From contig JBLDXI010000018.1 in NCBI GenBank assembly GCA_047495785.1, positions 124,001 through 188,000 of the forward strand: a stretch of 64,000 bases of DNA. The letters are read 5' to 3'. Positions 17,915-39,653 of the stretch are shown here, in pieces; position 1 is the first letter of the stretch, and each line of letters opens with the position of its first letter. Below the pieces are notes generated by a model. That model was not told where the DNA came from and did no database searches. It was given only the letters and a program-made list of their open reading frames with translations. The position numbers and the translations under genes are program-made. The stretch comes from Lepidodermella squamata. Its lineage: Eukaryota; Animalia; Gastrotricha.

Positions 17915-20900
17915 AAACTGTTTCGAACCTTTGTTGACACTTTCTGATCAATGCAAGATAGGAAACGACGAGAGATCAGATGAAGATGAACAGGTAGGCG
18001 AACGATCTGCTAAAAGACGTCGCAACAAAAAGAACCTTCGTAGCCACCAAGCTTATGAATTATTTAGACTGATTTTGTTGGCAACACTAAATATTAGAAC
18101 CGAAAAAGACAAAAATTGGGAGATGGATGATGAATTTGCAAATTTTCACGTGGTAGCCGTGCAAGAGCATCGTATGAAAGGGAAAGGTTCAATCAACCTT
18201 GGTTCTGGAATTTTTTATTATTGTGGCCTGGATGACGGTGCGACGGCCCGTTCTGGGACAGGATTGTACGTAAAAAAATGTAAATTTATCAAAGTCACAT
18301 CAATAAATTTTGTTAGCGACCGATTAATGTCGGCCAGGCTAAAAATCTATCGTGAGACCTTCAGCGTCATAGTAGTCTATGCACCCGCGGCGAATGACAC
18401 GAAATTACTGGACAAATTTATTTCTGATTTACAGCTGGAATACAATAGATTGGTGACTAAGTCAGGTAAAATTATAATTCTGGGCGACCTGAATGGTCAA
18501 GTTAAAAGCCAGAAAAACTCAAAAGTTGTAGGCGAACACGCTAATCCAATAGGAAACCCAAAAGGCAACTGCTGGGTTGAATTTGCGGCTAGTAATAATT
18601 TGTGCTTTGTAAACTCATTTTTTCCTAATTGCGGATACTCTTGGGTGTCAGGTGACGGTAAAAATCGACCGCTAATTGATTTCGTACTAACTCCTACTGA
18701 GGATAGGCAATTATTCCACTCGTCATATCGTTGAAGAACCTGTTTTGGGATCTGATCATCGGTTAGTCGTTGCTAAGCTAAAACTCCCGTATTACAATAG
18801 ACCCAAAGTAATTAACTCTGGAAAAATTCTGAACAATAACCGTCTACGTGACAGTAATTATCAAACAGTTTTCAATGAAAAAATCACTGATCTTCGCAAC
18901 TCGAAAGTCAGTGATGAAGCATCGACATCTACTAGCCTGAGCGCTCAATACAAAAACATGAAAAACACGCTGCTTTCAGCCACTAGAATCGCGTGCGGTG
19001 AGCGAGCAAGAACAATTTTCAACCCAAAACCACCCTGGTGGTGCAAACAGGCAGCAGAGGCTGTGAAAACAGCTAAAGCCAGCTATGCGCAGTACCAGAA
19101 ATCTCTGATAACTAAGGAAGTGTATAACAAAGTTCGAGACTGGAAGAAAAAATTGCTGCAAAAACTGGAGAAAGATTTCAACATTAGAGAATTACAAGAT
19201 TTGAACGATTTGAACGAAGGAAATGACTGGGAAAATTTACGAAAATTTTGGGCTAAAGTTAAAAAACTACGGAACCAGAAAAATGGCGGCGCTCAATTAT
19301 TACAACCGATAAAGAATAAAGACGGTGAACTAGTCACTGATTTAGATCAAATTCTTGATGCGATGAAGGATTACTTTTCGGAGCTCCTCGAGGGCTGTGA
19401 GATTGACGACTTCATTGCAGAATGCGACGCAAACATTGGCAGCGACGAACCCCCTCCGCCTGATTCGGACGGTATTAGTACTCAAGAAATCAAATCAGCC
19501 TTAAATCATATGAAAAATGGCAAGGCCGCCGGCATCGATGAGGTAACCCCAGAGATGCTGAAAGCCTTGGATGACGCCGGTATTGAATGGCTCGCGCAAA
19601 TTCTAAATCAGGCTTGGTCGACCAAGACCATCCCTGAGGAGTGGTCGACGGCGATCATAGCACCATTATATAAGAATAAGGGCGAAAAATCAGATTGCAA
19701 AAATTATCGCGGAATCAGTTTACTGAGTTTTGTTGGAAAATTATACGCGATCATCCTGGAACGCAAATTGCGAAGTTTAATTGGCGCTAAAATTTCCAAA
19801 CGTCAATTTGGCTTTCAACCAAGGAAAGGCTGTAGGGATTGCATTTTTGTGCTTCGAAGACTTATTGAAAAAGTTATTTGCTGCGGCGGTAAGGAAATGC
19901 ATTTAGTTTTCATTGACCTGGAGAAGGCCTACGATCTGATCGACCGCGAGAAGGTCTGGGCCGCGCTCGAGGAACTAGGTGTCGATGCTAACCTTATTGC
20001 GGCTGTTAAAAGCTTTTATAAATGTAACAAAGTAGCAGTCAAAATAAATAATCAACTCTCGGACTTCTTTGTGGTGAAGAGGGGCTTACGGCAAGGCTGT
20101 CCCTTGTCTCCGCTACTCTTCATCGCAACGTTCGATAAAATCTGCCGAAAATTGATGGACACCCCAGGTGGCTTCCCTATTAATACTGAACAATTTTTGA
20201 ACCTGATTGCCTTCGCGGATGATGGAACTTTAATAGGTATGAGTCATGAAGAAATTAAATTATTATTGGATGTTTTCAATAAGGCATGTACGGAGCTAGG
20301 CTTGAAAATCAGCATCAGTAAAACACAATACATGGTGATCGGTGAGGATAGAAACTACCAACTTGAATTAGACGGCAAACTTTTGGAAAAAGTGACGTCT
20401 TTCAAATATTTAGGAAGCATCATCACTTCTGACGGGAAAATGGACGAGGAGATCAAGGCACGCATAGCGAAAGCTGGCGGCTGCGGTGCCCTCAATAAAC
20501 TTATGTGTAATAGAAAACACGTGAACTTAGCTACGAAATTGAAAGTCCTTAAATGCGTTGTTATTCCTACCGTCACCTATGCCTGCGAAACCTGGAACCT
20601 GACCACCCAACAAGAGCAAAGGTTAAATGTCACCTTTATGCGATGGCTTAGAACAATTATGGGTCTGTTTAGGACAGATTATATTCCTAATGTTGATATT
20701 AGACTGATCTGCGACGTAATGGAATTGAGTAAATTGATTGAAAAATTTCGTCTGAAATATTTTGGCCATATAATTCGACAGGACGAATATGACCCTGAAA
20801 GTCTCACGAGTATTATGTATTATTGGAAAACAGTCGACCCGAGTTGGTACTTGCCTCGCGGCAGGCCGCCAACCCGATGGTCCGACTGCCTCCGAAGAAG

Positions 20901-21164
20901 CCTTCTAAAAATCGGAATTTTTTATATACATGAACAACGTATCAGGGATCCTAAAAACGAGGGCGACCCCGTAAATCAACCTTATTGATGCGACGCATCG
21001 AAATTCACAAAATTGCGGATTTAGAATTGGCGGAAGTAACAGCTAGAGACCGGGAAGAATGGCAGCTACTATGTAACAGTATAGAAAATTATGAATTCAT
21101 GGGAAAAAGCAGATTGTTCGCGACTGTTCCTGAAGCTGATCTCTCGTCGTCAGCCGTCCCCTAA
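17890..21164 (+). pseudogene. LINE ORF2 (APE endonuclease-reverse transcriptase) broken by at least two frameshifts
   Basis: Frame change at ~18730 just before GSDH; second change near 20980, after which LLMRRIEIHKIADLELAEVTARDREEWQ..VP* runs to TAA 21162-21164. Confidence 0.8.
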
Positions 21165-21983: not shown

Positions 21984-22740
21984 CCGTACTGCCTGAAATG
22001 TTGGGCCTGTCCTATATTTGTTTCAAACCAACACGGAACCCCGTCTTATATTTGAGACCGCTCTTTATTTGAGGCCTGACCTTTATTTTTTCGAACCCTC
22101 TTTTCAACACATAGTGAATTGTCAAAATTAATCATTTTGTTCATCGGCAAGTAAAACTTCATCCTCCTCGTCATCATCACCTTCAGGAGACTCGCAGTCG
22201 TTTTTCTTGCCCTCCTCTTCATCATCCGCAACAGTTTGGCTTGTTGGCAGAGCTTTCGTCGACTTCAGTAAATCATAGGCACCCCGACATGGCTTTCCTG
22301 GTTTGAGACAGGATATCAGGTCATCTTCCGAGCCATCTAGAGCGACCGTAACACCACATTGCTTGAAGGAATCCTCGATTAGCTCCAACTTAATTGACCT
22401 CCAAGCTTCAAGGATCCACGAGCAGACCACCTCGTAACTGGGGGCCCTCATATTCCCACCTTTTGTGAAAGAATGCTGACTCGAGTCGGCCAAGTACTCA
22501 TCGTACAGCTCGACCAACTTCCTCTTGAATTCACGATTCCATATAACATCCGGGGCTTGCAAATATTTAGTAGTCCCTCCCGGTATCACGGCGATGTCTA
22601 GGCCATAGCGACTAAGTTCTTTTTTCGTATTTTTACTTATGTGAGCGCGAAAACTGTCCCAGCACAACAGGCGACGGCGGCCAAACATCGTACTACCGAA
22701 GACGCGACGCAAGTAACTGGCAGTAAGTTCATCGTCCATA
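21984..22740 (-). mobile_element. 5'-truncated pogo-family (DD35D) DNA transposon; transposase C-terminal part at 22128-22739
   Basis: LCWDSFRAH...LQAPDV with 35 residues between the two Asp; IPGGTT; acidic tail; terminus TA|CCGTA at 21982-21988. Confidence 0.85.
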
Positions 22741-22872: not shown

Positions 22873-24487
22873 CTAGCCATCGACCATAGCGCAGGTGTAC
22901 TCGTATCGGTGAGTGATGTGACTAGTGCGCACCAGTTGGAACTGTTGCAGCAACTTACCATCGGGACAGGTCGGGCGTTGGCCGACGAGGGGGAATGTTT
23001 TGCCCTGGGCATCATCGACGAAATCATCGGTCGCATGTTTAGTAGTGATGAGCGTACCCCAGACCTAAAAAAATCTTTGTAAAGTATCAGCGGTTGGATC
23101 TTTGGAATTCGCACCGAGCAGCAAGCGTAGGAGTAGCCAATTCTACCTTCAGAAATCATGCGGTCCATACCCAGTAACACTTTCTGCAGGACCTGGTTAG
23201 CATTGCATTTGACATTTTGTCTGTCAAGGAAATCGGTGTTGCCGTAGTACCCGAAAGTATAATCGTTCTCCACGTAGATGCACGACGCAACGAGAGAAGG
23301 AGCAGCACAGCACGTGTACGTGTACTGGGCGGAGGTTCCATTAGGTCATTCCATGGTCAGTCCGAATGAAGTCAGGTAATTTTTGTCGCCACAATCCAGC
23401 ATGACAGGAGGATATGTGAAGCTGTACACGTTCCCGTTGGGATCATTGACCAACTGGGCTTTCAGGATGGCACCGGAGCACTGCTCATACCACTTGGGAG
23501 CTACAGTAAAGCAATGTTATTGACGTTTTAACCGCTGCTTCGCAACTTACGGCGAGGGATGAAACCAACGCAGGTGTATTCGAAGCGTATCATGCCCTGA
23601 GTTACATCGCGTTGCAAGTGCCACCTCTGCAGCAGCTCGCCATCCGCGCATGTCAGATTGTGACGGCCAAACGACGTCGTTCTGTTACTTGCCGTGTCGT
23701 AAGTGGTTGTCAGCGCCCTTTTGTTAAGATCATATGGGGCAAAAATCTGGCCAAAAAAGAAAAATACATGAGAGGGTGCAGATCAGTGATATGAACGTTG
23801 GTACGAGAGTGGCTAGTGCCCAATAGACTTGGGTAAATTTTATAAACAGGCTGAAGGCTACCATTGCGAGATGTCCTAGTAGACAACGGAGGGGCCGCTT
23901 CAAACGGTTGCCTGCTAACTGTTACTGTCCTCTTTAAATTCCCGTGAAAAAGGGAACATGTAGATGAGCACAAAGGTTCAGGCGTCATGACCTGGCTACT
24001 AACCTCGCAGCAAGTGTAGCTGTATCTGATTTGAGTCCACCATGCGGACAGGGAGAAGCCTTTAAGAACTTCATTGGCGTTGCAGTTGATATCCTGCTTC
24101 TCCAGTGAGACGATACCAAAGCTATTGCTTTCAGTGAGGTCATTGGCAACCTGCCTGCACGTTTTGACTATCGGGGCCTTGCAGCACTTGTATTCATACT
24201 GAGCCGACCAGCCAGACGAAGACGGAGTGAACTTGGTCCTCCACGACGCCAGGTAGCTGCCGTTGGGGCAGTTGACATAACGGTTGTTGAAATCGTATAG
24301 CATGCCATCGGTGTAGAACGCGTCGGTGGTGCTCACTCCAGTGGAGCAATCGACAGGCTTCGCAGGGCTAACCGTAGTTTCTGAAGAGAAGAATGCAACA
24401 TGGGCTAATATTGGATTCAAGGCTCGGTATCTTACGGCAAAAGGCAATGCTGAAAATCGCCGCGATAACAGCCAGTCCGAAACTCAT
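22873..24487 (-). pseudogene. Secreted Cys triplet-repeat protein copy A (6 repeats), disrupted by in-frame TGA
   Basis: Signal exon 24487-24436 plus four further exons; GLTME*PNG (TGA 23346-23348) where paralogs read GLTRP; normal stop TAG 22873-22875. Confidence 0.75.
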
Positions 24488-25762
24488 CTTACGGAAAGTT
24501 TGCAATCGGCAGTTGAATTTGCAAGGCAAAAATAGGTGAATGACTAAATGACACTGCTGCCGGTTGAGCTTCTTGCGGATGTTTATGGACGGTATTATCT
24601 TAAACTCAACGACAACTGAGCACACTTTCCGACGGAAAGAGCGCGGTTGCGGGGGCAGAGAGGCAGCAATTTTTGCTGGCACCAATACCTAGTAAAATAT
24701 ATACCTAGTGTAAAAATACATTTTATTATTTTAAACAAATATGTTTAACAATTATTATTCGCATCTCAACTTCGGCATTACTGTAAAGGTCGCCCTTTGG
24801 CAGCGCAGCGCGAATTGGACGAAATTTACGAGTGTAAAGCGGCGCTACAGCAAGGCATGGCCTCATTTATTGTCCAATGGCTTTTATTCTCGTGGAGCAG
24901 TTTCACAGTTTGCGAGTGGAATCGCGAAATTTATCGCGATTAACAATGAGCTGCGCTAATGCGATTGATCAGCTACGCCTCTTAATGATGTTATTCTAGA
25001 TATTAGTCAGCAAGCCAATATGAAATATCGTTTATTTCTGATTAATTTAATATGATCCGAAAAAATTAAAAATGTTATCCTGTCCCGTAGATATTGACTG
25101 CATGAAAAAAGTCATTGCATTCAGCGAATCAGCAAGAGAAGGTTGGATCCTCCATCCAAAGATCCGAAAAATCAGTCGAAAAAGCATCTGAGGTCGACCA
25201 AGAAAAGTGCGCGTATTACGAGTCATGTGTTGAATATTTCAAAGCAAAATACAACCTCTACCAGTCGAAGTGAACATGAGAAGTAGCAGGTCGTGGTGCC
25301 ACTATGATGTTAACGCCTGTTTTCTTTGACATTCAGATTCGAAGGTCGTTGCGGCCAAAAATAACCGCATTAGCAGTGATCGTTATGTTTCTTCCGTGAT
25401 AATAATGTTATTCATGAAAATCACTTATTAACGCAAAGATCAGTTTTAAGCGGCGACCTGGAGATCTCGATCCCAAAAAACTGAATTGCGTTGATTATTG
25501 TCAATGAAATGGTGCAAAAGAACGGTGAAATAATAAAGTTTGAAGTTTGAAGTTTGAAACAAAAGCTTTATTCATTCTACGTTCATCAGTAATCTGAGTC
25601 GCATTCTCATACCTTGAAATTAATATATTTTGACGATATTTAATCTTATAGCTCGTATAATAGTTATATATATGTGTTAGATTGTTCAGCCTTCACCGCC
25701 AATCCCTTAACTAATCTGCAGTCTGCTCCTGCTCTCCAATTCATGCAACAAAGCTCACAAGC

Positions 25763-27371
25763 CTAGTTCTCGACCTTTGCACAGGTGTATTCGATGCGGT
25801 GGTAGCCATATCCATTACGTTTCAGTTGGAACTGTTGCAGCAACTTGCCATCGGTGCAGGTCGGTCGATGGCTTACGAGGGAGAACGTTCTCCCAAACTG
25901 ATGAGTCTGTTCATCGGCATAATTGGTCGCATAGCCACTTAAGGTGACCTTACCTACAACCTAAAAAAAAGTATCTAAAAACAACAGCGATTGAATTTAT
26001 GAAATTCGTACCGAGCAGCAAGTGTAGTTGTAGCCAATTTTACCTTCGCTATCAAAAGATAGGTATTCCAAGACAAATCTGCCCATGACCTCGTTGGCAC
26101 TGCATTGGGCATTCTGCCTGTCAAGGAAATTTGCGTCGCCTTTGGAGGCAGGAGTCCAACCGTTGAAGACATTGCGGCACGACGAAGCGATGGGAGCAGC
26201 ACAGCAAGTGTACGTGTACTGGAGGCCGCCAGGCCTGGTCAGTCCGAATGAAGTTATATAACTGCCGTCGGGACATTTGACAGGCATATAACTGAGCCAC
26301 ACGGTTATCCCAACCGAGTCTGGAGCTTCCGATGTTTTCAGGATGTCATTGGAGCACTTTTCGTACCACTGAACTACATCGAAGCAATTATGTTTGATTA
26401 TCAATCGGGACTTTGCAACTTACTGCGACGGATACTTGCGCAGGTGTATTCGAAGCGTATCATGCCCTGGGCTACATCGCGCTGCAGGTGCCACCTCTGC
26501 AGCAGCTCACCATCCGCGCAAGTGAGATTGTGACGGTCAAACGACGTCGTTTTGTTACTTGCCTTGTCGTAAGTGGTTGTTAGCGCCTTGGTGCTAACTG
26601 CAAATGCGGCATCAACCTGGGAAAGAATTTCAAGAGTACACGGTTGGCTGTTTTCCAAAGCACATGCTTTCAAGCTTCAAGGCGGGGGAGGGGGCGGAGG
26701 GGGGGGGGGGCGGAGCAACACCCCCCTCATATTGAAGTGGGCCTTGTCTATGAAAATAGACAACAGACAACTGTACGAAACAGAAACCTTCTGACAGAGA
26801 AGTCTGGCCCCTTAACAGTCCAGTAAAAATAATACGACAAAATGCGGGCGTCATGATCCCGATACTAACCTCGCAGCAAGTGTAGTTGTATCTGATCTGA
26901 TTCCACCATGCGGACAGCGAGAAGCCCTTAAGAACTTCATTGGCGTTGCACTTGATATCCTGTTTGTCCATGGAGACGACATCGAAGCCATTGCTATCCG
27001 TCAGGTCATTGACAACCGGTCTGCACTTTAAGACAGACGGGGCCTTGCAGCACTTGTATTCATACTGAGCCGACCAGCCAGACAAACCAGACCAACCGGA
27101 CGAAGACGGAGTGAACTTGGTCCTCCACGACGCCAGGTAGCTGCCGTTGGGGCAGTTGACATAACGATTGTTGAAATCGTATAGCATGCCATCGGTGTAG
27201 AACGCGTCGGTGGTGCTCACTCCAGTGGAGCAATCGACAGGCTTCGCAGGGCTGACCGTAGTTTCTGAAGAGACGAATGCAACATGAGCTAATATTGGTT
27301 TGAAGAGAAGGTAACTTACGGTTAAAGACAATGCCGGAAATCGCTGCGAGAACAGCCAGTCTGAAACTCAT
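25763..27371 (-). CDS. Secreted Cys triplet-repeat protein copy B (6 repeats), 5 exons
   Basis: MSFRLAVLAAISGIVFN signal; repeats NCPNGSYL..YKCC, KCNANEVL..YTCC, TCADGELL..YTC, KCPDGSYI..YTCC, LDRQNAQC..YTCC, TCTDGKLL..YTCAKVEN*. Confidence 0.8.
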
Positions 27372-27761
27372 CTTACGGAAAGTTTCCATTCGTCAGTAGA
27401 ATTTGAAAGGAAAAACAGATGAATGCTCAGATGACACCGCTGCCGGTTGAGCTTCTTGCGGATGTTTATGGACGGTATTATCTTAAACTCAACGACAACT
27501 GAGCACACTTTCCGACGGAAAAAGCGCGGTTGCGGGGGCAGAGAGGCAGCAATTTTTTGCTGGCACCAATACCTAGTAAAATATATACCTAGTGTAAAAA
27601 TACATTTTATTATTTAAAGAAATATGTTTAACAATTATTATTCACATGCCAACTTCGGTATTACTGTATAGATCGCCCTCTGACATGGCCTCATTTATTG
27701 TCCAGTTGTTTTATTCCCGTATGTAACATTTTTATTGTTTCAGGTGAATTCGCGCAATTAA

Positions 27762-28062
27762 CCCTTTCACGGCGGGAAGGACGATTTCGGAAATCGCGGA
27801 AAATCGAATTTGATGAATTCGTGATCGCCCTTTTGAGGAAGTTTGCTCTTCGATGTTGCCTACAAGGTTTTGAAACCAGGACACCGTTATCTTGCATGGT
27901 CAGGACATACCAGCAATTTGAAACAATTTGTTTTCGTACAGCCTTAGCGGTGATAGATAAAGACAAACGGATTTCAAAATCGTGATCAGGGCCTTCGAAA
28001 ACCCCTAACACTTCCGTCAAATATTTTTTCTACCGCAGATAACTAATTCCGCTATGAAAGGG
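27762..28062. mobile_element. piggyBac-type MITE
   Basis: TTAA|CCCTTTCACGGCGG ... CCGCTATGAAAGGG|TTAA; the paralogous region upstream of copy A (~24920-24960) lacks it. Confidence 0.85.
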
Positions 28063-29597
28063 TTAATCGCGACCAGTCATGAGCAGCGCCAATTAGTAGC
28101 GGTTTGCCGACAAATAATTTCAAATGCTCAAAATGTGATAAAGGTGAACAGAAATAGCATAATAAATATTGGGGTGGAAAATAATGACATGATTCATCTC
28201 AATAAATTTGAAGCGATGAACTTTGCCTCTTATTAGTCTGACTTCAGTTTTCGTGTCCGAAAACCTCTTAGTGCGACGTCCTACCTACGTCACATGAGTC
28301 GCCTCTATAATAAAGCCGAAATCATGCACCCCCAATAATAATCATAGCAACATGAGGACGAAAAGACTAAATCAGCTGTGGCTTAGTACAAAACGCTCGA
28401 AATGTTATTTTGATATCGGTTTAGGTTTAGACTTGAAAATAGTTAAAATAAGAAAAATCTTGAGCTTTTAGTATGGTTAAGCTCCACTCAGTACAAAAAC
28501 GTCATGCGAAACGCCAGCAGCACATTGTCCCTATCCAGCAACCCACCGCAAAAGTGCGGGATGAACTGCGGGATAGCGATAAGCGGTAAGCGATAGCGCA
28601 GTAACCATCCAGTTTCCATGGGAGAACTTGGCAATCAGCGAAATAGAATCTGAACCGCGGCAGCGTTCTCGTTCAGCGGCCGCTTTCAGTAAGTATAGAA
28701 TTGCGAGGGCTACCCGCTGTTACAAGATTTAACAATCGGTGATAATCGATTCGCCTTGCAATCGATTTCAAAAGCCGATTTCGACACGATCGGCTGCGTT
28801 ATATTGTTCAACGGCCGCTTACAGTTATCGATACAGTAATCATATTTCAGCACGAATCGAATCTTCTGAGTGTTGATAGAGGACTTCTTTTTTTCCTCCA
28901 CTATAACCTTGGAGGTACTGCATCCACAAGTTTCTGACAATCGCTGGTCGCTGGGGTTGATTCTCTGAGGTTGCATGTCAGCACAGTGAAAGATGTAGAG
29001 AAGCGAGCTCAAAGAAATTCCCGAGTGAAGCCGCATTTGATTTCCTGGGGCTCGCTCAGTTCATCGCCGACGCGAACTTGAAAGCTTTTGTCGCTTAGAA
29101 AGTTTGCCAAACTTGCGATACAAGCACAGGAATAAACTCTCAGCGCCCTCTGGTCTGACAATTTATACCATCTAAATATAATAATGCTATATACTAATGC
29201 TAGATACTAAATACTAATGTCTCAATTCAGTCCGGCGTGTGGCGCGTGGCGCCTAAGTACCTACGTGGCAGCAAGTATAGTTATATTTGATCGAATAATT
29301 TGCATAGCTTTGTTGGAAGCCATCGTCACGTTGCGTATGAAAGGGGCGCCATTTTATTATTATTACGAAAATTAAATATAAAGACCGATTATGTCCCAAA
29401 TTTTATAGCACTTTACTCCTCTCGCAATGACCTATCCAATGATGCAGGTGGTATCCACATAATCGCTTTCGTGGTCATTCAAACCTGGATTTAATTTTAA
29501 CGGTGTTTTTCATTTATTATCGAAACAGATTCACAATATTTCTATTATTAATATTCCAGCCATCGGTTCCGCCCAATGCGAATGGGATAATGAATTG

Positions 29598-30257
29598 CCA
29601 CATTTTCCGGCCCGCCGGTGTTTCCTCCGCGCGCGCGCTCCTATTGGTTGGCTCGTTTTACGCGTAAATACGCCTCGCTCGCATTTATTGCGCAACAAAT
29701 AATTGCAGCCCTCCCTCGCGCGCGCGCATGAAAAGGCATGTACAAGTCCGAAATTCAGGAGAAAATTAAGTTCAACGTCACCCTAAAATAGCTTAAATTA
29801 GCCTAAAATAGCGCGCCTAAAATGGCTATTTCCAGTTTATTTTTTTATTTTATAATTTTTCATAAAAAAATGCGTGTTCTTCGAAAAAAATCCATCGCAT
29901 CCTTTCTCTTAAATGAACTTTTTAAATTCTCACGGCGGGTGTTTTTGGATACGAACAGATAAGTCATCAAATAAAGACGTGTAGGCCGCCACGATGCAGT
30001 CAATTTTGTTGTCGTATTAACAATACCAAACATCCTTTTTAAGGGTGGGCTATATATTTTTGTTGGAAAGCATGCAGCATGCTTGTCTTTTGTCTTTGAC
30101 TTAGCAAACTGTCTTAGACTTAGCGCACGGGCGCTCAGGGCGCGTTCGAGTGCGCGCGCGCGGGGGTAGGCTACAATTATCTTGAAATGTTGCGCAATAG
30201 GCCCCAACCAATAGGAGCGCGCGCGCGGAGGAAACACCGGCGGGCCGGAAAATGTGC
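29598..30257. mobile_element. Mutator-like MITE
   Basis: ~50-bp perfect TIR CACATTTTCCGGCCCGCCGGTGTTTCCTCCGCGCGCGCGCTCCTATTGGTTGG, imperfect to ~130 bp; 9-bp TSD AATGAATTG (29589-29597, 30258-30266). Confidence 0.88.
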
Positions 30258-30517
30258 AATGAATTGCCGTTTTTGATCGATCTGCATGAAGGCTCCCGCT
30301 AAGCAGATCACGGTCAAGTGAGAATGGGGTGAATTGATCTTCCTTCACATTTTGAGGACGTGTTTGATGAGGCCTAAGGCGCCTTAGAGCCGCTCCAAGG
30401 CGACTGTAAGGCAACTTGCATTAATCATTCCAAGGCTTCTAAGTGTGCTGCGATTCACAACTCAGGCTGATTAATGAAATATAAATATTTTCATAAGTAA
30501 AATATTTACTCCACGGG

Positions 30518-30660
30518 CAGTGCCGGATCATGACACCTGAACTTGACCATGGGCCCCTATAGGCAATAGGCAATTCTCTGATCGGGGCCCAGCTGAGCGC
30601 TTGGGGGTGAGGTTCCCCTGTGGGTTTCGACTGAGCAGCCAACAGTTTCCTCCGGCCTTG
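30518..30660. mobile_element. Short hAT-type MITE
   Basis: CAGTGCCGGA ... TCCGGCCTTG ends; exact 8-bp TSD TCCACGGG (30510-30517, 30661-30668). Confidence 0.8.
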
Positions 30661-31266
30661 TCCACGGGGTTATTTGACACTTGGTTTCACGTAGATAGCG
30701 TCGACTGCTCTTATAACCGCTAACAAACTACAAAAGGAGATGCCAAAATCGTTTTCTGCTGCGGAGTAATTGAAGCTGAAAGTTTCGATTGCGTAATTTC
30801 GTCAAACGGTTTGATTACTGAAGCAGCGTTAGCCATCGTAAAAAGATTGTTCCCGGTCGATTTATCCAAACATTTAAAACATTTATTCAAAGTTCAAATG
30901 TAGAATTTCGGATTGGTTTCAACCTCAAAGCTATACTTTTACCCCAGCCATTTTCTGGTGTGAAAGCTTTGAAGCGTAGTGATTCTTGCCCATAGCAAAC
31001 CGCTGAGATGACAAACTTACGAGTGAATTTTATATCTATTCCACATTCTTTTTATCGCTTTATTCATTCCATGTTCGTCGCCAATCTGACCCCGACTCAC
31101 TTCCCTCTCAAATACATATTATCGATACAATAAAATGTCTTATATAACAATATATAAGGCTTATGCGGTACAACGCTCACACTGTTTCATACTGCTCACA
31201 CTTCGACTATAAATCTGCTGACTAATCTGCAAGCTGCTGCTGCTCTCCCGTGCATGCCACACAAGC

Positions 31267-33360
31267 TTAGTCCTCGACCTTAGCGCAGGTGAACTCGTAG
31301 CGGTGGGTGTTACTGGCTCTTCGCACCAGTTGGAACTGTTGCAGCAACTTCCCATCGGGGCAGGTTGGGCGTTGGCCGACCAGAGGATACGTTTTGCCCT
31401 TGGGATCATCCACGTATTCACTGGTCGAAAGGCTAGTGGTGGTAACCTTCCCCGTGACCTAAAAACAAATTTCTCTAAAACGTCGGCCTTACTATTTAGG
31501 AAATTCGCACCGAGCAGCAGGTGTAGAAGTAGCTGATTAAACCTTCGGGAATTTTCCAGGGGTCCAGAACCTGGACTACGCTTCGCAGGACCTCATTAGA
31601 ATTGCATTTGACATTTTGGCGGTCAAGGAAATTGGTGTCGCCGTAGTAGGCGGGGGTCCAACTGCTCTGTACTTTGCGGCACGACGAAGCGAAAGGAGCT
31701 GCGCAGCACGCGTAGGTGTACTGGGTGGCGTTTCCATTCGGCCTCGTCAGTCCAAATGAAGTGATGTAATTATTCGCGCGACAATCAATGTTAAGATAAG
31801 TGAGCTGGAGCATGTTTCCATCGGGGTCATCTCTCAAGCCGGTTTTCAGCGTGGTATTGGAGCACTTCTCGTACCACTTGGCAGCTACAGAGAAGCAATG
31901 TTATTTCTTTAACACCTGTAGCTATGCAACTCACGCATAGCGATTTTAGCACATGTGTATTCGAAGCGTATCATGCCCTGGGCTACATCGCGTTGCAGGT
32001 GCCACCGCTGTAGCAGCTCACCGTCCGCACAGGTGAGATTGTGATTGCTGAAAGACGTCGTTTTGTTGCTTGCCTTGTCGTAATTGGTTGTTAGCGCCGT
32101 TGTTTTGATATCATACGCACTGTCAACCTGGGAATGAAAAGCACATGAGAGGTGCAGGGTAGTGCCCGACGCCAAAAATCACTGCGCAATCAGAGGGTAA
32201 AAGTGGACTTGCCAAGACGAAATGTTTAAGAATATTGTGGCAGCGCGCGGTAATCCGTAGGATAATAATGAAGTTTTCCATTTTTAATGCTACCTAACCC
32301 CCAGGGAGATGGCACCGGTTTCCAAACAGGCTTGGCCATCTTGACGTCATCCGAATGAAAAATTCGACTTTTTTCTAGATGCTATCTTTTTTAAAATAAT
32401 TTTCAATAGGATGACGTCAAGATGACGTGTTGGGGGCCCGTGGAGGCCCTAAAGCGTGTGCCCGTGCGCTGTTTCGCACAATTACAGATTACCTAAATAT
32501 TTCAAAATTGTGCAAAGTAGTAATTTTAACCAGATTAAATGAAAACTGACAGATTTCTTCAATTCATTCAGACAATTCCACCATGCGAGTGCACAATCGT
32601 GGTTTCATGATAGACAACCCTAGAAAGAGGCACCTTCAGGCTTGTTACCCAAACATTCCTGAGACTATACCCGTACCCAGTCGAGCCTCTTAGTGAGGTT
32701 CATAGGTACATTCGGACGCCATGATTTCGCATATTGAAGTGGGCCTTTTCTATGAAAATAGACAACAGACAACTGTACGAAACAGAAACCTTCTGACAGA
32801 GAAGTCTGGCCCCTTAACAGTCCAGTAAAAATAATACGACAAAATGCGGGCGTCATGATCCTGATACTAACCTCGCAGCAAGTGTAGTTATATCTGATCT
32901 GATTCCACCATGCGGACAAGTAGAAGCCTTTCAGAACCTCATTGGCGTTGCACTTGATATCTTGTTTGTCCATGGAGACGACATCGAAGCCATTGCTATC
33001 AGTCAGGTCATTGATGACTTGTCTGCACTTCCCGACTACCGTGGACTTACAGCACTTGTATTCATACTGGGATGACTGAGACGACCAACCAGACGAAGAG
33101 GGAGTGAACTTGGTCCTCCACAACGCCAGGTAGCTGCCATCGGGGCAGTACAGGTTACGATTGTTGAAATCCTGTAGCATGCCATCGGTATCAAACGCGC
33201 TGGTCGTGCTCACTCCAGTCGAACAGTCGACAGGCTTCGCAGGGCTGACAGTGGTTTCTGAGAAACGAGTTTGAGACGAGTGAATGACGGATTAAAAGAA
33301 CTTACGGCTAAAGGCAATGACAAAAGCCGCTGCGAGGACAGTCAGTCTGAAACTCATCAT
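31267..33360 (-). CDS. Secreted Cys triplet-repeat protein copy C (6 repeats), 5 exons
   Basis: Same exon and phase structure as B; ends YEFTCAKVED* (TAA 31267-31269); ATG 33360 or 33357. Confidence 0.8.
32337..32424. repeat. Small inverted repeat (MITE-like) in intron of copy C
   Basis: CATCTTGACGTCATCC ... GGATGACGTCAAGATG. Confidence 0.55.
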
Positions 33361-34668
33361 ATAAGAAACGTTTCTGTTGACGGTTTAGTAAAAAACGATA
33401 AGATGTATGAACAAATGACACTACGGCCGGTCGGTTGACGATTTTTATTGGCGGAATTATTTTTAACTCGACTTCAAAAAGAGTAGTTTCTACCGAAAAA
33501 CAGCGTGGTTGTGGGGGCAGATACGCAGCTATTGTTTGCTAGCACCAATAGCTAGAAATACCATATTGCTAATATGATAATTAATTTTATTATTAATAAA
33601 CTGCCATTTGAAAATATAATTTGTTTAATTATTATTCACAACATAACTTGAGCATTACTGTATTGGTCGCTTTCTGGCAGAGCGAATATGAAGAAATTGC
33701 GCAGCTGGCCTGACAGCTATTCTTAGCATTCGATAATGCCGCATTCAAAATGCTGGCGAAGCAAGGTTTGACCTCATTTATTGTCAGAACACATTTATTC
33801 TCGTAAAACGCTTCTTTCAATTTCCTCGTGATGAAGAGATGGATTCACAAATGTGCGACAGGTACAACATTGTCGCTCTGATTTCTGGATCGAGCCTCAA
33901 GTCATCACTACCCCTTATGTGAATGAATGAATGAGCTATATATTTTTGAAAATAAATTGTTCAACAAGTAAAATCTTGAATGAGCTTCCTAAAACTTGCT
34001 TCCCTGAAAGTGTTGGCATCGAACACTTCAAAACCAATTTGAAGGATGTAGGCTGCATCTCACCATCGTGATAAAAACTGCCAAAGTTCTTTCGTAATTA
34101 AAAAAAATCAGATACACCGACCGTGGGCCGTGCCTGGTGTCTGGTTTGAGTTTGGTTCGAAGCATCTTGGAAGTGTCTGAAGGTGGAAGCATAAACACGA
34201 GAAATGGCCGGACCGCTGACTTCTCATCTTCACTGTATCTACAGTTGACATTACGTTAGTAAAATTTAGCTTCGCGCAAGAAGGGCGACTTCACTAAAAA
34301 TAGCTGAAAATAGCGCGTTCTACGGGCAAGTGACGTCAACTAAACAGCCCTTAAGTGTATCTGATGTGAACTGAACTGAATTCTGGAGTCGACATTGCCT
34401 ATGGGTCATTGTTCAATATGTTAACATTACATAAAATTCGACTATGTTTTTTTTATCGCTTTATTCATTATCACTATTATCGCGATTATCACTAAACTTA
34501 CTCTCAATCAGATCCCTCACCCCTCACAAGCAATAATTATACGGTATGTAACCTTATTGAATACGTTAATGATTATTATACGGCACAGTCTTCACATAAT
34601 TTTCTCTAACAATCTCTCGACTAATCTGTTAGCCGCTCCTGCTCTCCAATTCCCGCCACACATGGGTA

Positions 34669-37320
34669 TTACTCGACCCTAGCGCACGTGAAGTCGTAGC
34701 GGTGGGTGTTACTGGCTCCACGCTTCAGTTGGAACTGTTGCAGCAACTTTCCATCGGGGCAGGTTGGGCGCAGGTTGGCTAGAGGATACGTTCTTGCCTG
34801 GGGATCATCGACGACTTCATTGGTTGCATGTTGCGAGGTGGTGAATTTACCCGAGAGCTAAAAAGAAATTTCTCTAAAAGTCTAGCAGTTTGATGTATAA
34901 AATTCGCACCGAGCAGCAAACGTAGTAGTAGTAGAAAAAACCTTCACGGCTAGTGTATTCGTCCTTTATGATGGTGAATCTTTGCATAACCTCGTTAGCT
35001 CCGCACTTGACGTTTTGCCTGTCAAGGTAACTGGTATTGCCGTAGTTACCAGATTCTCCCAGGTTCGAGACTATGCGGCAGCTCGATTCGAAAGGAGCAG
35101 AACAGCACGTGTAGGTGTACTGGATGGTGGTTTCGTTCGGCCTGGTTAGGCCGAATGAAGTGAGGTAATTACCGTCCTTGCAATCCAAGTAGTGTAGGGA
35201 CAGCTGGTACATATTCCCATTGCGGTCATCGGTTAACGGGCCATATCGAGTGGCATTGGAGCACTTCTCGTACCAAAAAGGAACTACAAGTAAGCAAAGT
35301 TATTAGATTATAAACCGTGGATATGCAACTTACGGCGAGGAGCGATACTAGCGCAGGTGTATTCGAAGCGCATCATGCCCTGAGCTACATCGCGTTGTAG
35401 ATGCCACCTCTGCATTAGCTCACCGTCCCCGCAGGCGACATTGTGACTGTCAAAGCCCTGCGGTTTGCTATTTTCCTTGTCGTAATTGGTTGCTAGAGCT
35501 CTGGTGGTAACAGCAAATAGGCCTTCAACCTTTAAATGAAAAACAAGAGGGAGATGCATGTTGATGCCCGCTCTTGCAGAGGGGTCAGGGGTCCCATTTC
35601 AGCGTAGGCAATAGTATGAGGTTGCCTAACAGTCAAACACCATAACAGTCAAATCCCATACGAGTCTTATATGAGTAAGCTCGCAAAAAAATTCCATCTT
35701 AGGCAATCAGAGTACTCCCAAAACAAAGGAACTTGCATCACGACCGATTCAAACTGAGACCCACGAGCAATTGGGCACATTAGAGCATCATGATCGCGAT
35801 ATACAAACCTGGCAGCAATTGTAGTAGTATTGGATCTTTCCATTTGTATAGACTAGTTTGAAGCCATTCAGAACTTCATTGGCGTTGCACTTGATATCCT
35901 GTCTGTCGAGGTAGAAAGCTTCCCCTTTGCCGACATCCGTGAGGCCATTGACAACTTGTCTGCACTTTCCGACAGACGGGGCCTTGCAGCACTTGTATTG
36001 ATACGTGGTATCGGACATATCTGGACTGTTAATAGTATTAGGAAGGCTTTTTTGCTTCCACCACTTCAGATAGCTACCATCAGGACAATAGATAGCAAAA
36101 CGGAACAGGTCGGATAATTGGCCGTAGGTATAATCGGTGATCGTTTGCACTTCATCCGAGCAGTAGACAGTCTTCGACGTGGTGGCGGGTACGGCGCAGG
36201 TGTATTCGAAGCGTATCATGCCTTGAGCTACATCGCGTTGTATGTGCCACCTCTGCAGCAGCTCACCGTCCGCGCAGGCGACATTGTGGCTTCCTAAAGA
36301 CGTCGTTTTGTTACTTGCCTTGTCATAATTGGTTGCTAGCACCTTTGTGTTCAGATCATATGCACTATCAACCTGAAAAAAACCACATTAGACATTATAG
36401 GCCGACTTTGAAGTCATGTGATCAAGGGCTAAGTCACGCGGTCGCGCGGTCGTTGTGATGGGGCGGTCGTCTAAACGGTGTAAATAATAATATGTGCCAC
36501 CAGGAGTCGAACTAAGGATGTTGGAATAACAAGCCATGTTTTTGATCCACTACGCCACAAATTCATAGCAATCAAGAGTTTCAATCAGTTTATCGATTGA
36601 GTAAAATGTGGTGTAAATATTTTCCTCCAGTGGATCTAAAACATGGCTTGTTGTTCGACTCCTGGTGGCACATCATTTTTCACTCTCGTGTCAGCAATCG
36701 TCCCGGCCTCTTACCCTCAACACAGTGCCAATTTTGTATACATAGTCTATATTATAGGTATTCCCATATATCCCCCTAAACGCCCCGAGATACTCCTGCT
36801 GTAAATAGCATTGATTCAGCAAATTTTCTCAATACCAACCTCGCAGCAAATGTAGTTGTATCTGATCTGATTCCACCACACGGACAGGTGGAAGCCCTTC
36901 AGAACCTCATTGGCGTTGCATTTGATATCTTGTTTCTCCAGCGAGACGACATCGAAGCTATTGCTATCCGTCAGGTCATTGACAACCTGTCTGCACTTTC
37001 CGGTGGGTACTTTGCAGCACTTGAATTCATACTGAGACGACCAACCAGACGAAGATGGAGCGAACTTGGCCCTCCACGACGCCAGGTAGCTGCCGTCGGG
37101 GCAGTACAGATAACGGAGGTTGAAATCGTATAACATGCCATCGGTGTAGAACGCGTCGGTCGTGCGCACTTCAGTGGAGCACTCGACAAGCTTCGCTGGG
37201 CTGACAGTAGTTTCTGAACACACGAATTCAAAATAGGACCATAATGCATTAAGGAGACAACAACTTACGACTACAGGCCAGTCCGAAAGTTGCCGCGAGC
37301 ACAACTAGTCCGAAATTCAT
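34669..37320 (-). CDS. Secreted Cys triplet-repeat protein copy D (9 repeats), 6 exons
   Basis: ATG 37320; extra 564-nt phase 0-0 exon 36372-35809 carrying three more repeats; ends YDFTCARVE* (TAA 34669-34671). Confidence 0.8.
36492..36672. repeat. Hairpin/MITE-like inverted repeat in intron of copy D
   Basis: ATGTGCCACCAGGAGTCGAAC..AACAAGCCATGTTTT mirrored by AAAACATGGCTTGTT..GTTCGACTCCTGGTGGCACAT. Confidence 0.65.
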
Positions 37321-38091: not shown

Positions 38092-39653
38092 TTAAACCCC
38101 AATGAAAGAGGTAACCATGAATAAAGTATTAATCGGCTGGTCAAAAGGGACCATGTGCCCAGCGTTTCGCATGACGAAGAACGTGAGCTGCCCAGCAGAT
38201 GTTGAGTAACCAAAGGCTTCCCCGGTATTGTCGGTCCAGATTTGTTTAGGAGCATGCCGCCAGTCTTCCTTGTGAGCCCAGTTGAGGGAGCGCAGGAATA
38301 GCTCGCTACCAACTGTTGGCACGATAATGTCGAGGTTGCCGCTGTAATACAAGATTGGAATCTCGGTTTTGTTCAGAAGATACTCGACTTGGCTTTTTGT
38401 GGTATTCATGAAATCTACGATCAAGTGCTGAGCAACAATTTTGGAGCCATCGTTGTATGGCAAGGATCCGACATGAATCTTGCGACGAGTATCATTCAAC
38501 TCAAGATAAGACTCAAAGTAATCCATTTCCGGGGGAGATTTCTGGAAATAAAATTAATAAGTAATAATCGTAGAATATTTTAGTTCATACCTTGCACAGC
38601 ATGAAATTGTAATGATCTGTGCATCCTGTAGCATTCAGCTGATAGATCGGGTAAGGATAAAACACCCCGAGCATTAGAGGGTCGAAGACGTTGTAAGCAG
38701 CAGAGAGTTGTCCTAACTTCACTAAGTCCAGGGCCAGGGATATCTGGCTGTTGAAGTAATCCCGTTGAGCGCTGTCGAACAGCCCAAGACTGTACATGTG
38801 ACCGCCCATGGGAAGGAACATCTATAATAAAGAAAGCGCTCCTGTCATATCTGGAAGTTTGTTTTCAGCCTTAAGTGAGGGTGAATCAAAGCAGTATAGT
38901 ACCGATTTGATTCTAACTTATTTGGCACGAAAAATATTCCTGAAATGACAGACTTACGATTGGATCTGAATAAGCATTCCCAATCAAAACTCCGGAAAGT
39001 TTGGCGACTGGAGACACTCCTCCGTTGGAGTCGTAGAAATCTTCCATCTTTGCAAGCTTCTGAGCAAAAGCAGGGACATATTTGCCGGCATAAGATTCTC
39101 CTGATAAGAAAAACTGCTTGGTCTGCAATTCAGGAAACATCGCGTAGAACTGAACAAAAAAGCTATACAAATCATCAGCAACTCCATCTTCATCGGTTCT
39201 GTAGCCATTGGGATCTGTTACGAATGAAAAACCAGTACCTACAGGACTGTCAATGTAAATCATGTTGTAGAAGTTGGTCCAGGAAGCTGGCCGTCTTGAG
39301 ACTTGATTATTAGCATCAACTTGGAATGGTCCATTTTCAGCGAATAACCCAAACAGGGATGATGACCCTGGTCCACCCTGAAGCCACAAAACTAGTGGGG
39401 CTTCGCCTTCATTGCGATTTGTTGGTGTGAACCAAAAGAACAGGTTTCCTCCAGTTTTGTTATTGATCGTAATAAAACCGGAGTAACTCTCTTGCCCAGG
39501 AATCAAAGGCTCAACTTTGGATTGTAGCCTCGCTTGATCTATCTGCCCTGACTGAATTAAAGGGGTGAGAAACAACGGCTGTCCCGGATCTATGTCAGCA
39601 TGAGAACTTGCTACGAGTGCTAAAACCCAGATAAAAATACTTCCTAGATGCAT
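38092..39653 (-). CDS. CPVL: Serine carboxypeptidase (peptidase S10), CPVL/vitellogenic carboxypeptidase-like
   Basis: Signal peptide, PLFLTP, WLQGGPGSSS, GESYAG (Ser), GNLD (Asp), AGHMVP (His); exons 39653-38958, 38821-38591, 38541-38092 join in frame. Confidence 0.9.

Follow-up and report, generated by a model that had tools for sequence, protein, structure and literature searches.

A tandem array of predicted secreted triplet-repeat proteins with a dermatopontin-like domain in the gastrotrich Lepidodermella squamata

The genome assembly of the gastrotrich Lepidodermella squamata (GCA_047495785.1, 121 Mb, here G000) carries on contig C18 (JBLDXI010000018.1) a tandem array of four genes, g1 to g4, which encode proteins built from a short cysteine-rich repeat that comes strictly in threes. 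The array was analysed within a stretch of 64,000 nucleotides (nt), corresponding to G000:C18:124001-188000 and referred to as the window, in which the four genes occupy exactly positions 22873-37320 of the minus strand, as determined by six-frame reading and splice-site analysis. The array belongs to a dermatopontin-like domain family that is widespread but unannotated and has expanded in this lineage, and the overall explanation that we consider best, and reasonably probable, is that the four genes encode secreted, divergent β-prism proteins resembling the dermatopontin family (Pfam PF14704, DERM) and having a binding role.

Four tandem genes built from repeat triplets

The gene models comprise six exons in g1, with 582 codons and nine repeats, and five exons in each of g2 (399 amino acids), g3 (399 amino acids) and g4 (400 codons), all three with six repeats. 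Every exon junction is GT-AG with a pyrimidine-rich acceptor, and the phases are conserved between the genes: a signal peptide exon of 52-55 nt ends in phase 1 and is followed by an exon encoding repeats A and B (phase 1 to 0), an exon encoding repeat C (0 to 1), an exon encoding repeats D and E (1 to 0), and a last exon running from phase 0 through repeat F to the stop codon. In g1, an additional exon with repeats C, A' and B' (phase 0 to 0) lies between the A-B exon and that of repeat C2, giving the order (A B C)(A' B' C2)(D E F). Because phase 1 marks both ends of the two-exon module that encodes a triplet, genes can gain entire triplets without a frameshift. The proteins start with a hydrophobic, signal-like segment of ~17 amino acids and reach their stop codon four to five residues past the final Cys, and no transmembrane segment was found in them. 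By direct count in the window genes, each triplet contains 10 Cys, with four in the first repeat, four in the second and two in the third. An earlier note on this DNA had described four genes encoding proteins with a signal peptide, without a transmembrane segment and with strict triplets of 10 Cys, and the gene models bear this out, with repeat counts of 9, 6, 6 and 6 and with every triplet forming a single unit. The repeat consensus proposed there also agrees with the family-wide consensus, T..N..G.G...YLDRH.V.C.....L..F.L.R.......Y.Y.C(C). The repeats are far above chance, with hidden Markov models built from pieces of them matching paralogous exons at ~63-189 bits and a search of the genome contigs reaching E-values down to 3e-44.

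Since transcription runs towards lower coordinates, g1 begins with an exon (37269-37320) that holds the start codon (ATG at 37320), the hydrophobic N-terminus and the signal peptide, and closes on a phase-1 donor, GTAAGT, after a final C. Repeats A and B of its first triplet, with eight Cys, lie between a ttcag acceptor and a GTTGGT donor following GAG (36840-37213). The third exon (35809-36372, 188 codons) fuses repeat C of triplet 1 to A' and B' of triplet 2, which ends with C2 in the fourth (35334-35529); triplet 3 consists of D and E (34910-35283) and of F with the stop codon (34669-34857). The five exons of g2 encode the signal peptide (33306-33360), repeats A and B (32872-33257), repeat C (31935-32127), repeats D and E (31511-31884), and repeat F with the stop codon (31267-31458). 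The same order is seen in g3, with a signal peptide exon at 27320-27371 and another in-frame ATG at 27389, an A-B exon containing the longest variant of a loop reading SSSGWS (26870-27264), and exons for C (26424-26616), D and E (26012-26373), and F with the stop codon (25763-25960). Finally, g4 comprises exons for the signal peptide (24436-24487), A and B (24004-24380), C (23551-23746), D and E (23115-23500), and F with the stop codon (22873-23064). Its D-E exon is broken by an in-frame TGA at 23346-23348, which represents a 6-nt insertion and one substitution relative to a near-identical intact copy on contig C106 (L024:1860-1960). Contig C106 also contains two inverted g4-like copies, so that it could represent either another haplotype or a segmental duplication of recent date.

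Divergence between the four genes is not uniform along the protein. Amino acid identity is 80-89% for the A-B exons, 54-81% for the C exons, 53-61% for the D-E exons and 53-72% for the F exons, and the SSSGWS loop differs by insertions and deletions, reading SSSGWSGLSGWS in g3 and SSSGWSSQSS in g2. At the DNA level, identity in 100-nt windows is 0.73-0.99 in the first triplet and 0.55-0.80 in the second. The ratio of nonsynonymous to synonymous substitution rates (dN/dS) is 0.17-0.35 in the A-B exons, with a synonymous rate (dS) of 0.16-0.57, and 0.28-0.49 in the D-E exons, with a dS of 0.77-1.08. Across all exons, dN/dS is 0.17-0.60 and in no module exceeds 1, and the array genes are under purifying selection. 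The dS is two to four times lower in the 5' half of the genes than in the 3' half, and the first 100 nt of the intron that follows the A-B exon are 99% identical between g2 and g3 (window 32700-32870 and 26700-26870, respectively), likely the footprint of gene conversion or of a very recent duplication of the 5' half. The g3 copy of this intron includes a (CCC)n/(GGG)n tract that the paralogue at locus L034 has as well. Given the lower 5' dS and the intron identity of up to 99%, gene conversion or recent duplication accounts for much of the contrast between the two ends; the 5' half is either of more recent origin or homogenised, and constraint on the 3' half is slightly weaker. Thus, while the uneven divergence behind the earlier proposal of constant and variable modules is real, with A-B most and D-E least conserved, the synonymous rates and the intron identity speak against an effect of selection alone.

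The window as a whole is eukaryotic in character, with fragmented open reading frames, a GC content of 40-50%, and remnants of retroelements and transposases; no tRNAs were found in it. Directly beside the array lie a 747-amino-acid open reading frame with a reverse-transcriptase domain (RVT_1, E 4e-35; 18745-20988, plus strand) and a DDE_1 transposase remnant of 203 amino acids (22128-22739, minus strand), and a serine carboxypeptidase encoded by two exons (Peptidase_S10, E 3e-63 and 4e-26; 38092-39653, minus strand) is found just upstream of g1. At least three more family members, one of them on the opposite strand, are located 42-59 kb before the window (G000:C18:65000-82000), and the gene cluster therefore reaches beyond it.

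Family members in the genome and homologues elsewhere

Searches for relatives were run exon by exon, or with single-exon paralogues, rather than with the joined, spliced g1-g4 proteins. Within the assembly, the 188-amino-acid exon of g1 gave 91 exon-level matches on 13 contigs, a profile built from 34 two-repeat exons (A1) gave ~59 strong two-repeat exon matches on at least 13 contigs, and a general triplet profile gave 124 matches, covering the same loci and a few more. Some of these loci form near-identical sets, namely contigs C29, C30, C4, C66 and C54, as well as C106 and C18, which may be uncollapsed haplotypes or very recent duplicates. Contig C45 (locus L031) carries two tandem six-repeat paralogues of 364 and 382 amino acids (L031:2136-3230 and L031:8807-9955, both on the minus strand), which hold all repeats in a single exon, in contrast to the two-plus-one exon pattern of the window genes. 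One of them shows an internal duplication of a short QGFQLQQK segment. Two other loci encode complete open reading frames of a different architecture: L032 (331 amino acids; L032:2109-3104, plus strand, contig C34) and L038 (346 amino acids; L038:1695-2735, plus strand, contig C25, with a twin on C26) each have a signal peptide and a single triplet ahead of a C-terminal module of ~150 amino acids with a Ser/Thr-rich alternating stretch, and are 29% identical to each other over 322 residues.

In a FastTree phylogeny of 266 two-repeat units, 29 of the 34 units from the L. squamata assembly, including every A-B and D-E unit of the window, form one clade without database proteins, with weak support (0.16), while L032, L033, L035 and the first triplets of the L031 genes fall outside it. 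This topology is consistent with a lineage-internal expansion that started from three or more older lines, and it shows no sign of recent transfer. Recent horizontal transfer was rejected on the intron-rich genes, the conserved phases and this weakly supported grouping. In general, the genes are ordinary in organisation and evolution, displaying tandem duplication, shuffling of exon modules and partial homogenisation.

Outside the genome, a full HMMER scan of 1.84 billion cluster representatives (clustered at 50% identity) with profile A1 identified 1952 protein clusters at E ≤ 1e-3, of which 1077 matched at E ≤ 1e-10 and 84 at E ≤ 1e-30, and a word search with a triplet profile (A5) added 561 proteins, nearly all named 'hypothetical'. 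The family-wide consensus occurs three times over in the homologues, triplets align in register, and repeat counts of three (74 proteins) and six (19) dominate, together making up 93 of 168. The named homologues are a transcript of the dinoflagellate Gymnodinium smaydae and 'uncharacterized' proteins of Mytilus edulis and M. galloprovincialis, the rest being unnamed metagenome proteins. Hence, the earlier description of an undescribed family does not hold in the sense of one that is new or restricted to a lineage. Many homologues consist of an N-terminal transmembrane segment or signal, a Pro/Thr-rich stalk and a single C-terminal triplet, and the Pfam partners found outside the triplet include B_lectin, ricin B, tectonin, PAN, TSP1, MACPF, CDtoxinA and PA14/GLEYA. 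Searching 401 Pseudomonadota genomes with the triplet profile gave no match, and bacterial membership is therefore not claimed, despite some bacterial Atlas labels. A word search with a 199-amino-acid exon found nothing, the query probably being too short for proteins of 399-582 amino acids, and a related-locus search with one protein matched only an unrelated TonB-like stretch.

Relation to dermatopontin and predicted fold

Dermatopontin is a protein of ~150 amino acids with three repeats and 10 Cys, and the DERM family also includes the Limulus haemagglutinin/amebocyte aggregation factor and molluscan shell-matrix dermatopontin, with roles in cell aggregation, matrix binding and shell. Among the homologues of the window proteins, DERM is the commonest Pfam family, matching 7 of 118 at E ≤ 1e-3 with a best E-value of 2.4e-7, and in a second sample it was detected in 8 of 103 at E ≤ 0.1. 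No other Pfam family recurs on the triplet itself, as DERM does in both samples. For example, the match in P0049 covers profile positions 9-123 of 152 and is colinear between the first Cys in repeat 1 and the LDRH motif in repeat 3, scoring 26.7 bits against a gathering cut-off of 28.3. P0049, a metagenome protein of 389 amino acids in which a PAN/apple domain and a single triplet are combined with a C-terminus weakly resembling beta/gamma-crystallin, serves as the clearest bridge to DERM. Protein language-model comparisons point in the same direction: the nearest named neighbours of the 188-amino-acid window exon are clusters with DERM in 16-23% of their members, scoring 0.93-0.94 with 205-214 of 256 shared features and 13 matches at 0.9 or above. 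Like dermatopontin, the window proteins are apparently secreted, have a domain of ~150-180 residues made up of three tandem repeats with 10 Cys, and display repeats that begin near a Cys and close with an aromatic-x-aromatic-x-Cys(Cys) strand. In contrast to dermatopontin, they lead with (Y)LDR(H/Q)xVxC instead of DR(E/Q)Wx(F/Y), and they repeat the domain two or three times per chain. The Cys count is not uniform across the family, as some homologues, such as the Mytilus protein P0245, have 12.

A structural model of the triplet was obtained with AlphaFold2 for the paralogue L032, using an alignment of 49 rows with triplets in register. Residues 17-195 were modelled with a predicted local distance difference test score (pLDDT) of 93-98, and the same order of elements is seen three times: a strand is followed by a short helix at YLDRH, by a short strand that includes a Cys, and by a long hairpin ending in Y.Y.C(C). 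In a separate, mixed alignment of whole triplets and exon pieces, the two-repeat rows had their last strand misplaced and were dropped. A three-fold fold, as suggested in the earlier note, is thus predicted with high confidence for the paralogous L032 triplet. The SSSGWS loop, in which insertions and deletions are found, maps to the long-hairpin tip of repeat A (L032 residues 59-60), and the corresponding tip of repeat B reads SAWWNQ. It could be speculated that exposed Trp residues at these tips would suit stacking against sugars or contact with membranes.

When the model was compared to solved structures using Foldseek, the V-domain of PCSK9 was the best match (E 5e-4 upward), and the APCbeta domains of perforin-like proteins from Plasmodium and Toxoplasma came next (E 0.03-0.17), all three-walled prisms spanning the entire triplet. 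PCSK9-V and APCbeta are the two known 'double-layered beta-prisms', composed of three direct repeats with two disulfides per wall (PMC6294395). The Cys of the window triplet are distributed as 4+4+2. These structures (PDB 2QTW, 7ANQ, 6D7A and 7PLN) match the triplet by Foldseek only, without sequence similarity, and the Foldseek scores are too weak to claim kinship. PDB sequence searches with single sequences and with profiles A1 and A5 gave chance matches only (LGR5 for the profiles) and did not reach APCbeta or PCSK9. The β-prism domain III of Bacillus thuringiensis Vip3 (PDB 6TFJ, 6TFK, 6V1V and 9EFG) was also matched, at 8-9% identity; it lacks the disulfide framework, belongs to another biological context, and its match score is within the range of what may be a mere common arrangement. 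Vitelline membrane outer layer protein I (VMO-I), a three-repeat β-prism already raised in the earlier note, shares with the triplet its three internal repeats of ~50 residues with disulfides. It was rejected, as its family (PF03762, VOMI) matched one paralogue at E 0.47 and 11 bits and none of the window exons, reached a language-model score of only 0.78 at rank 24, and was absent from the structural matches. Membership of the beta/gamma-crystallin and resistin-like families was rejected as well.

Several observations weigh against reading the window proteins as DERM-like β-prisms. Pfam searches of every window exon and of the full-length paralogues returned no family match, and PF14704 in particular was not matched by the window exons (E ≤ 1), the single-exon paralogues (E ≤ 10) or the six-frame translation of the assembly (E ≤ 10). 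The DERM matches in homologues mostly score just under the gathering cut-off. The window proteins lack the DR(E/Q)Wx(F/Y) signature, and even a loose DRxW pattern occurs in 0 of 172 homologues. As for the fold, the modelled triplet is that of a paralogue ~31% identical to the window A-B exons, and the model of the C-A'-B' exon from the window is poor, with a predicted template modelling score (pTM) of 0.39 and a pLDDT of 94-96 for C, 66-83 for B' and below 50 for A'. This poor model can be attributed to the exon straddling two triplets and thus representing no natural domain; its A' repeat is insertion-rich. Furthermore, the three-fold packing and the disulfide pairing are read from secondary structure, structural matches and the Cys pattern.

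The triplet could accordingly belong to an independent Cys-rich repeat family, separate and unnamed, that came to resemble dermatopontin by convergence of disulfide-closed β-hairpins. The absence of DERM matches from the window proteins and the assembly, the missing DRxW, the 111 of 118 homologues without a DERM match and the lack of a sequence relative in the PDB would all suit such a family. Yet, convergence explains poorly why DERM alone recurs on the triplet in two samples of homologues, with E-values to 2.4e-7, far below chance for 118 scans, why the match runs colinearly across more than two repeats, why the language-model neighbours bear DERM, and why repeat number and domain size, as well as the Cys count on record for dermatopontin, are the same. 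We therefore consider an independent family improbable. Taken with the three-repeat, 10-Cys design, the DERM matches and the language-model neighbours lead us to read the triplet as a divergent DERM-like domain, and this assignment, with homology inferred from sequence comparison, is quite probably correct. The earlier note was right that the DRxW motif is absent, while its dismissal of dermatopontin is not supported, since DERM recurs both on the triplet and in the language-model neighbours.

To our knowledge, no dermatopontin structure has been solved. A broader and more speculative proposal, which we regard as unlikely, is that the YLDRH triplet is an ancient pan-eukaryotic β-prism module uniting the dermatopontins, the double-layered β-prism of PCSK9 and the membrane-binding APCbeta domain of apicomplexan perforin-like proteins. 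If true, dermatopontin would go back, in fold and origin, to a targeting domain found in pore-forming and lectin proteins, and the window genes would encode its free, multivalent invertebrate form.

Putative function and significance

According to the explanation that we favour, g1-g4 would form a tandem, lineage-expanded array encoding secreted proteins whose building block is a domain of ~170 residues with three homologous repeats of ~55 residues. Each repeat would contain a β-strand, a short turn or helix at (Y)LDRQ/H, a Cys, and a long β-hairpin ending in Y.Y.C(C), and the three repeats probably form the walls of a pseudo-threefold β-prism held together by five disulfides, of which repeats 1 and 2 would have two each and repeat 3 a single one. 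The family would represent a divergent, unannotated branch of the DERM superfamily in which (I/V)(R/Q)(Y/F)xYxC(C) has taken the place of DRxW, and in-frame duplication of the exon module encoding two repeats plus one would have produced chains of two prisms in g2-g4 and three in g1. Such proteins may act in multivalent extracellular binding and cross-linking, of an agglutinin or matrix-adhesion type, with the Trp-bearing tips of the long hairpins (SSSGWS and SAWWNQ) as candidate contact sites. The signal peptide, the two or three rigid prisms without an anchor, the partners of the triplet in homologues and the roles of the dermatopontin family together point to a multivalent extracellular binder or agglutinin as the likeliest role, although we give this prediction only a near-even chance. 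The lectin- or agglutinin-like nature suggested in the earlier note thus fits the secreted multi-module design and the lectin, adhesion and toxin partners seen in homologues, and it stands as a prediction.

Alternatively, the proteins may be structural, as are vertebrate dermatopontin and the molluscan shell-matrix dermatopontin. They would then be incorporated into scales, cuticle or adhesive secretions, where they would cross-link fibres of the matrix instead of recognising foreign sugars. While the DERM link, the matrix and shell roles of dermatopontins and the secreted multi-domain design are consistent with this, the partners of the domain in protist homologues are mostly lectin, adhesion and toxin modules, and tandem, fast-diverging paralogues with indel-prone loops are more typical of recognition proteins. 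A matrix component is thus a doubtful alternative.

It is also conceivable that the triplet serves mainly as a membrane- or glycan-targeting domain of pore-forming toxins, as APCbeta does, in which case the window proteins would be stand-alone binding subunits, decoys or opsonin-like defence factors. The two top Foldseek fold groups, PCSK9-V and APCbeta, are jointly the only double-layered β-prisms (PMC6294395), one homologue carries a MACPF domain, and MACPF proteins of Chromera terminate in a DERM domain (PMC4501334). In addition, the hairpin tips carry Trp, as does the membrane-inserting loop of APCbeta, and language-model features place the C-terminal module of L032 and L038 beside molluscan aerolysin-like proteins (score 0.93), making these two paralogues candidates, on sequence features, for a pore-forming toxin with a DERM-like targeting domain. 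However, no sequence similarity connects the triplet to APCbeta or PCSK9, the window genes lack a pore-forming module, and homologues have lectin-type partners no less often than pore-forming ones. Moreover, the C-terminal module of L032 and L038 has no Pfam match, and in L032 (residues 206-321) its pLDDT is below 50. We consequently regard a primary role in toxin targeting as very unlikely, and a multivalent extracellular binder remains the role that we prefer.

Approximately 2000 protein clusters from protists, molluscs, L. squamata and metagenomes share this defined three-repeat, disulfide-rich domain, and nearly all of them are labelled 'hypothetical'. Together with the confident predicted fold, the tie to dermatopontin would allow curators to broaden or divide the DERM model. 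It would also supply a structural hypothesis for dermatopontin itself and draw attention to a binding module that recurs in combination with lectins and pore-forming domains. For the genome of L. squamata, the array would add one more expanded family of predicted secreted recognition or adhesion proteins.

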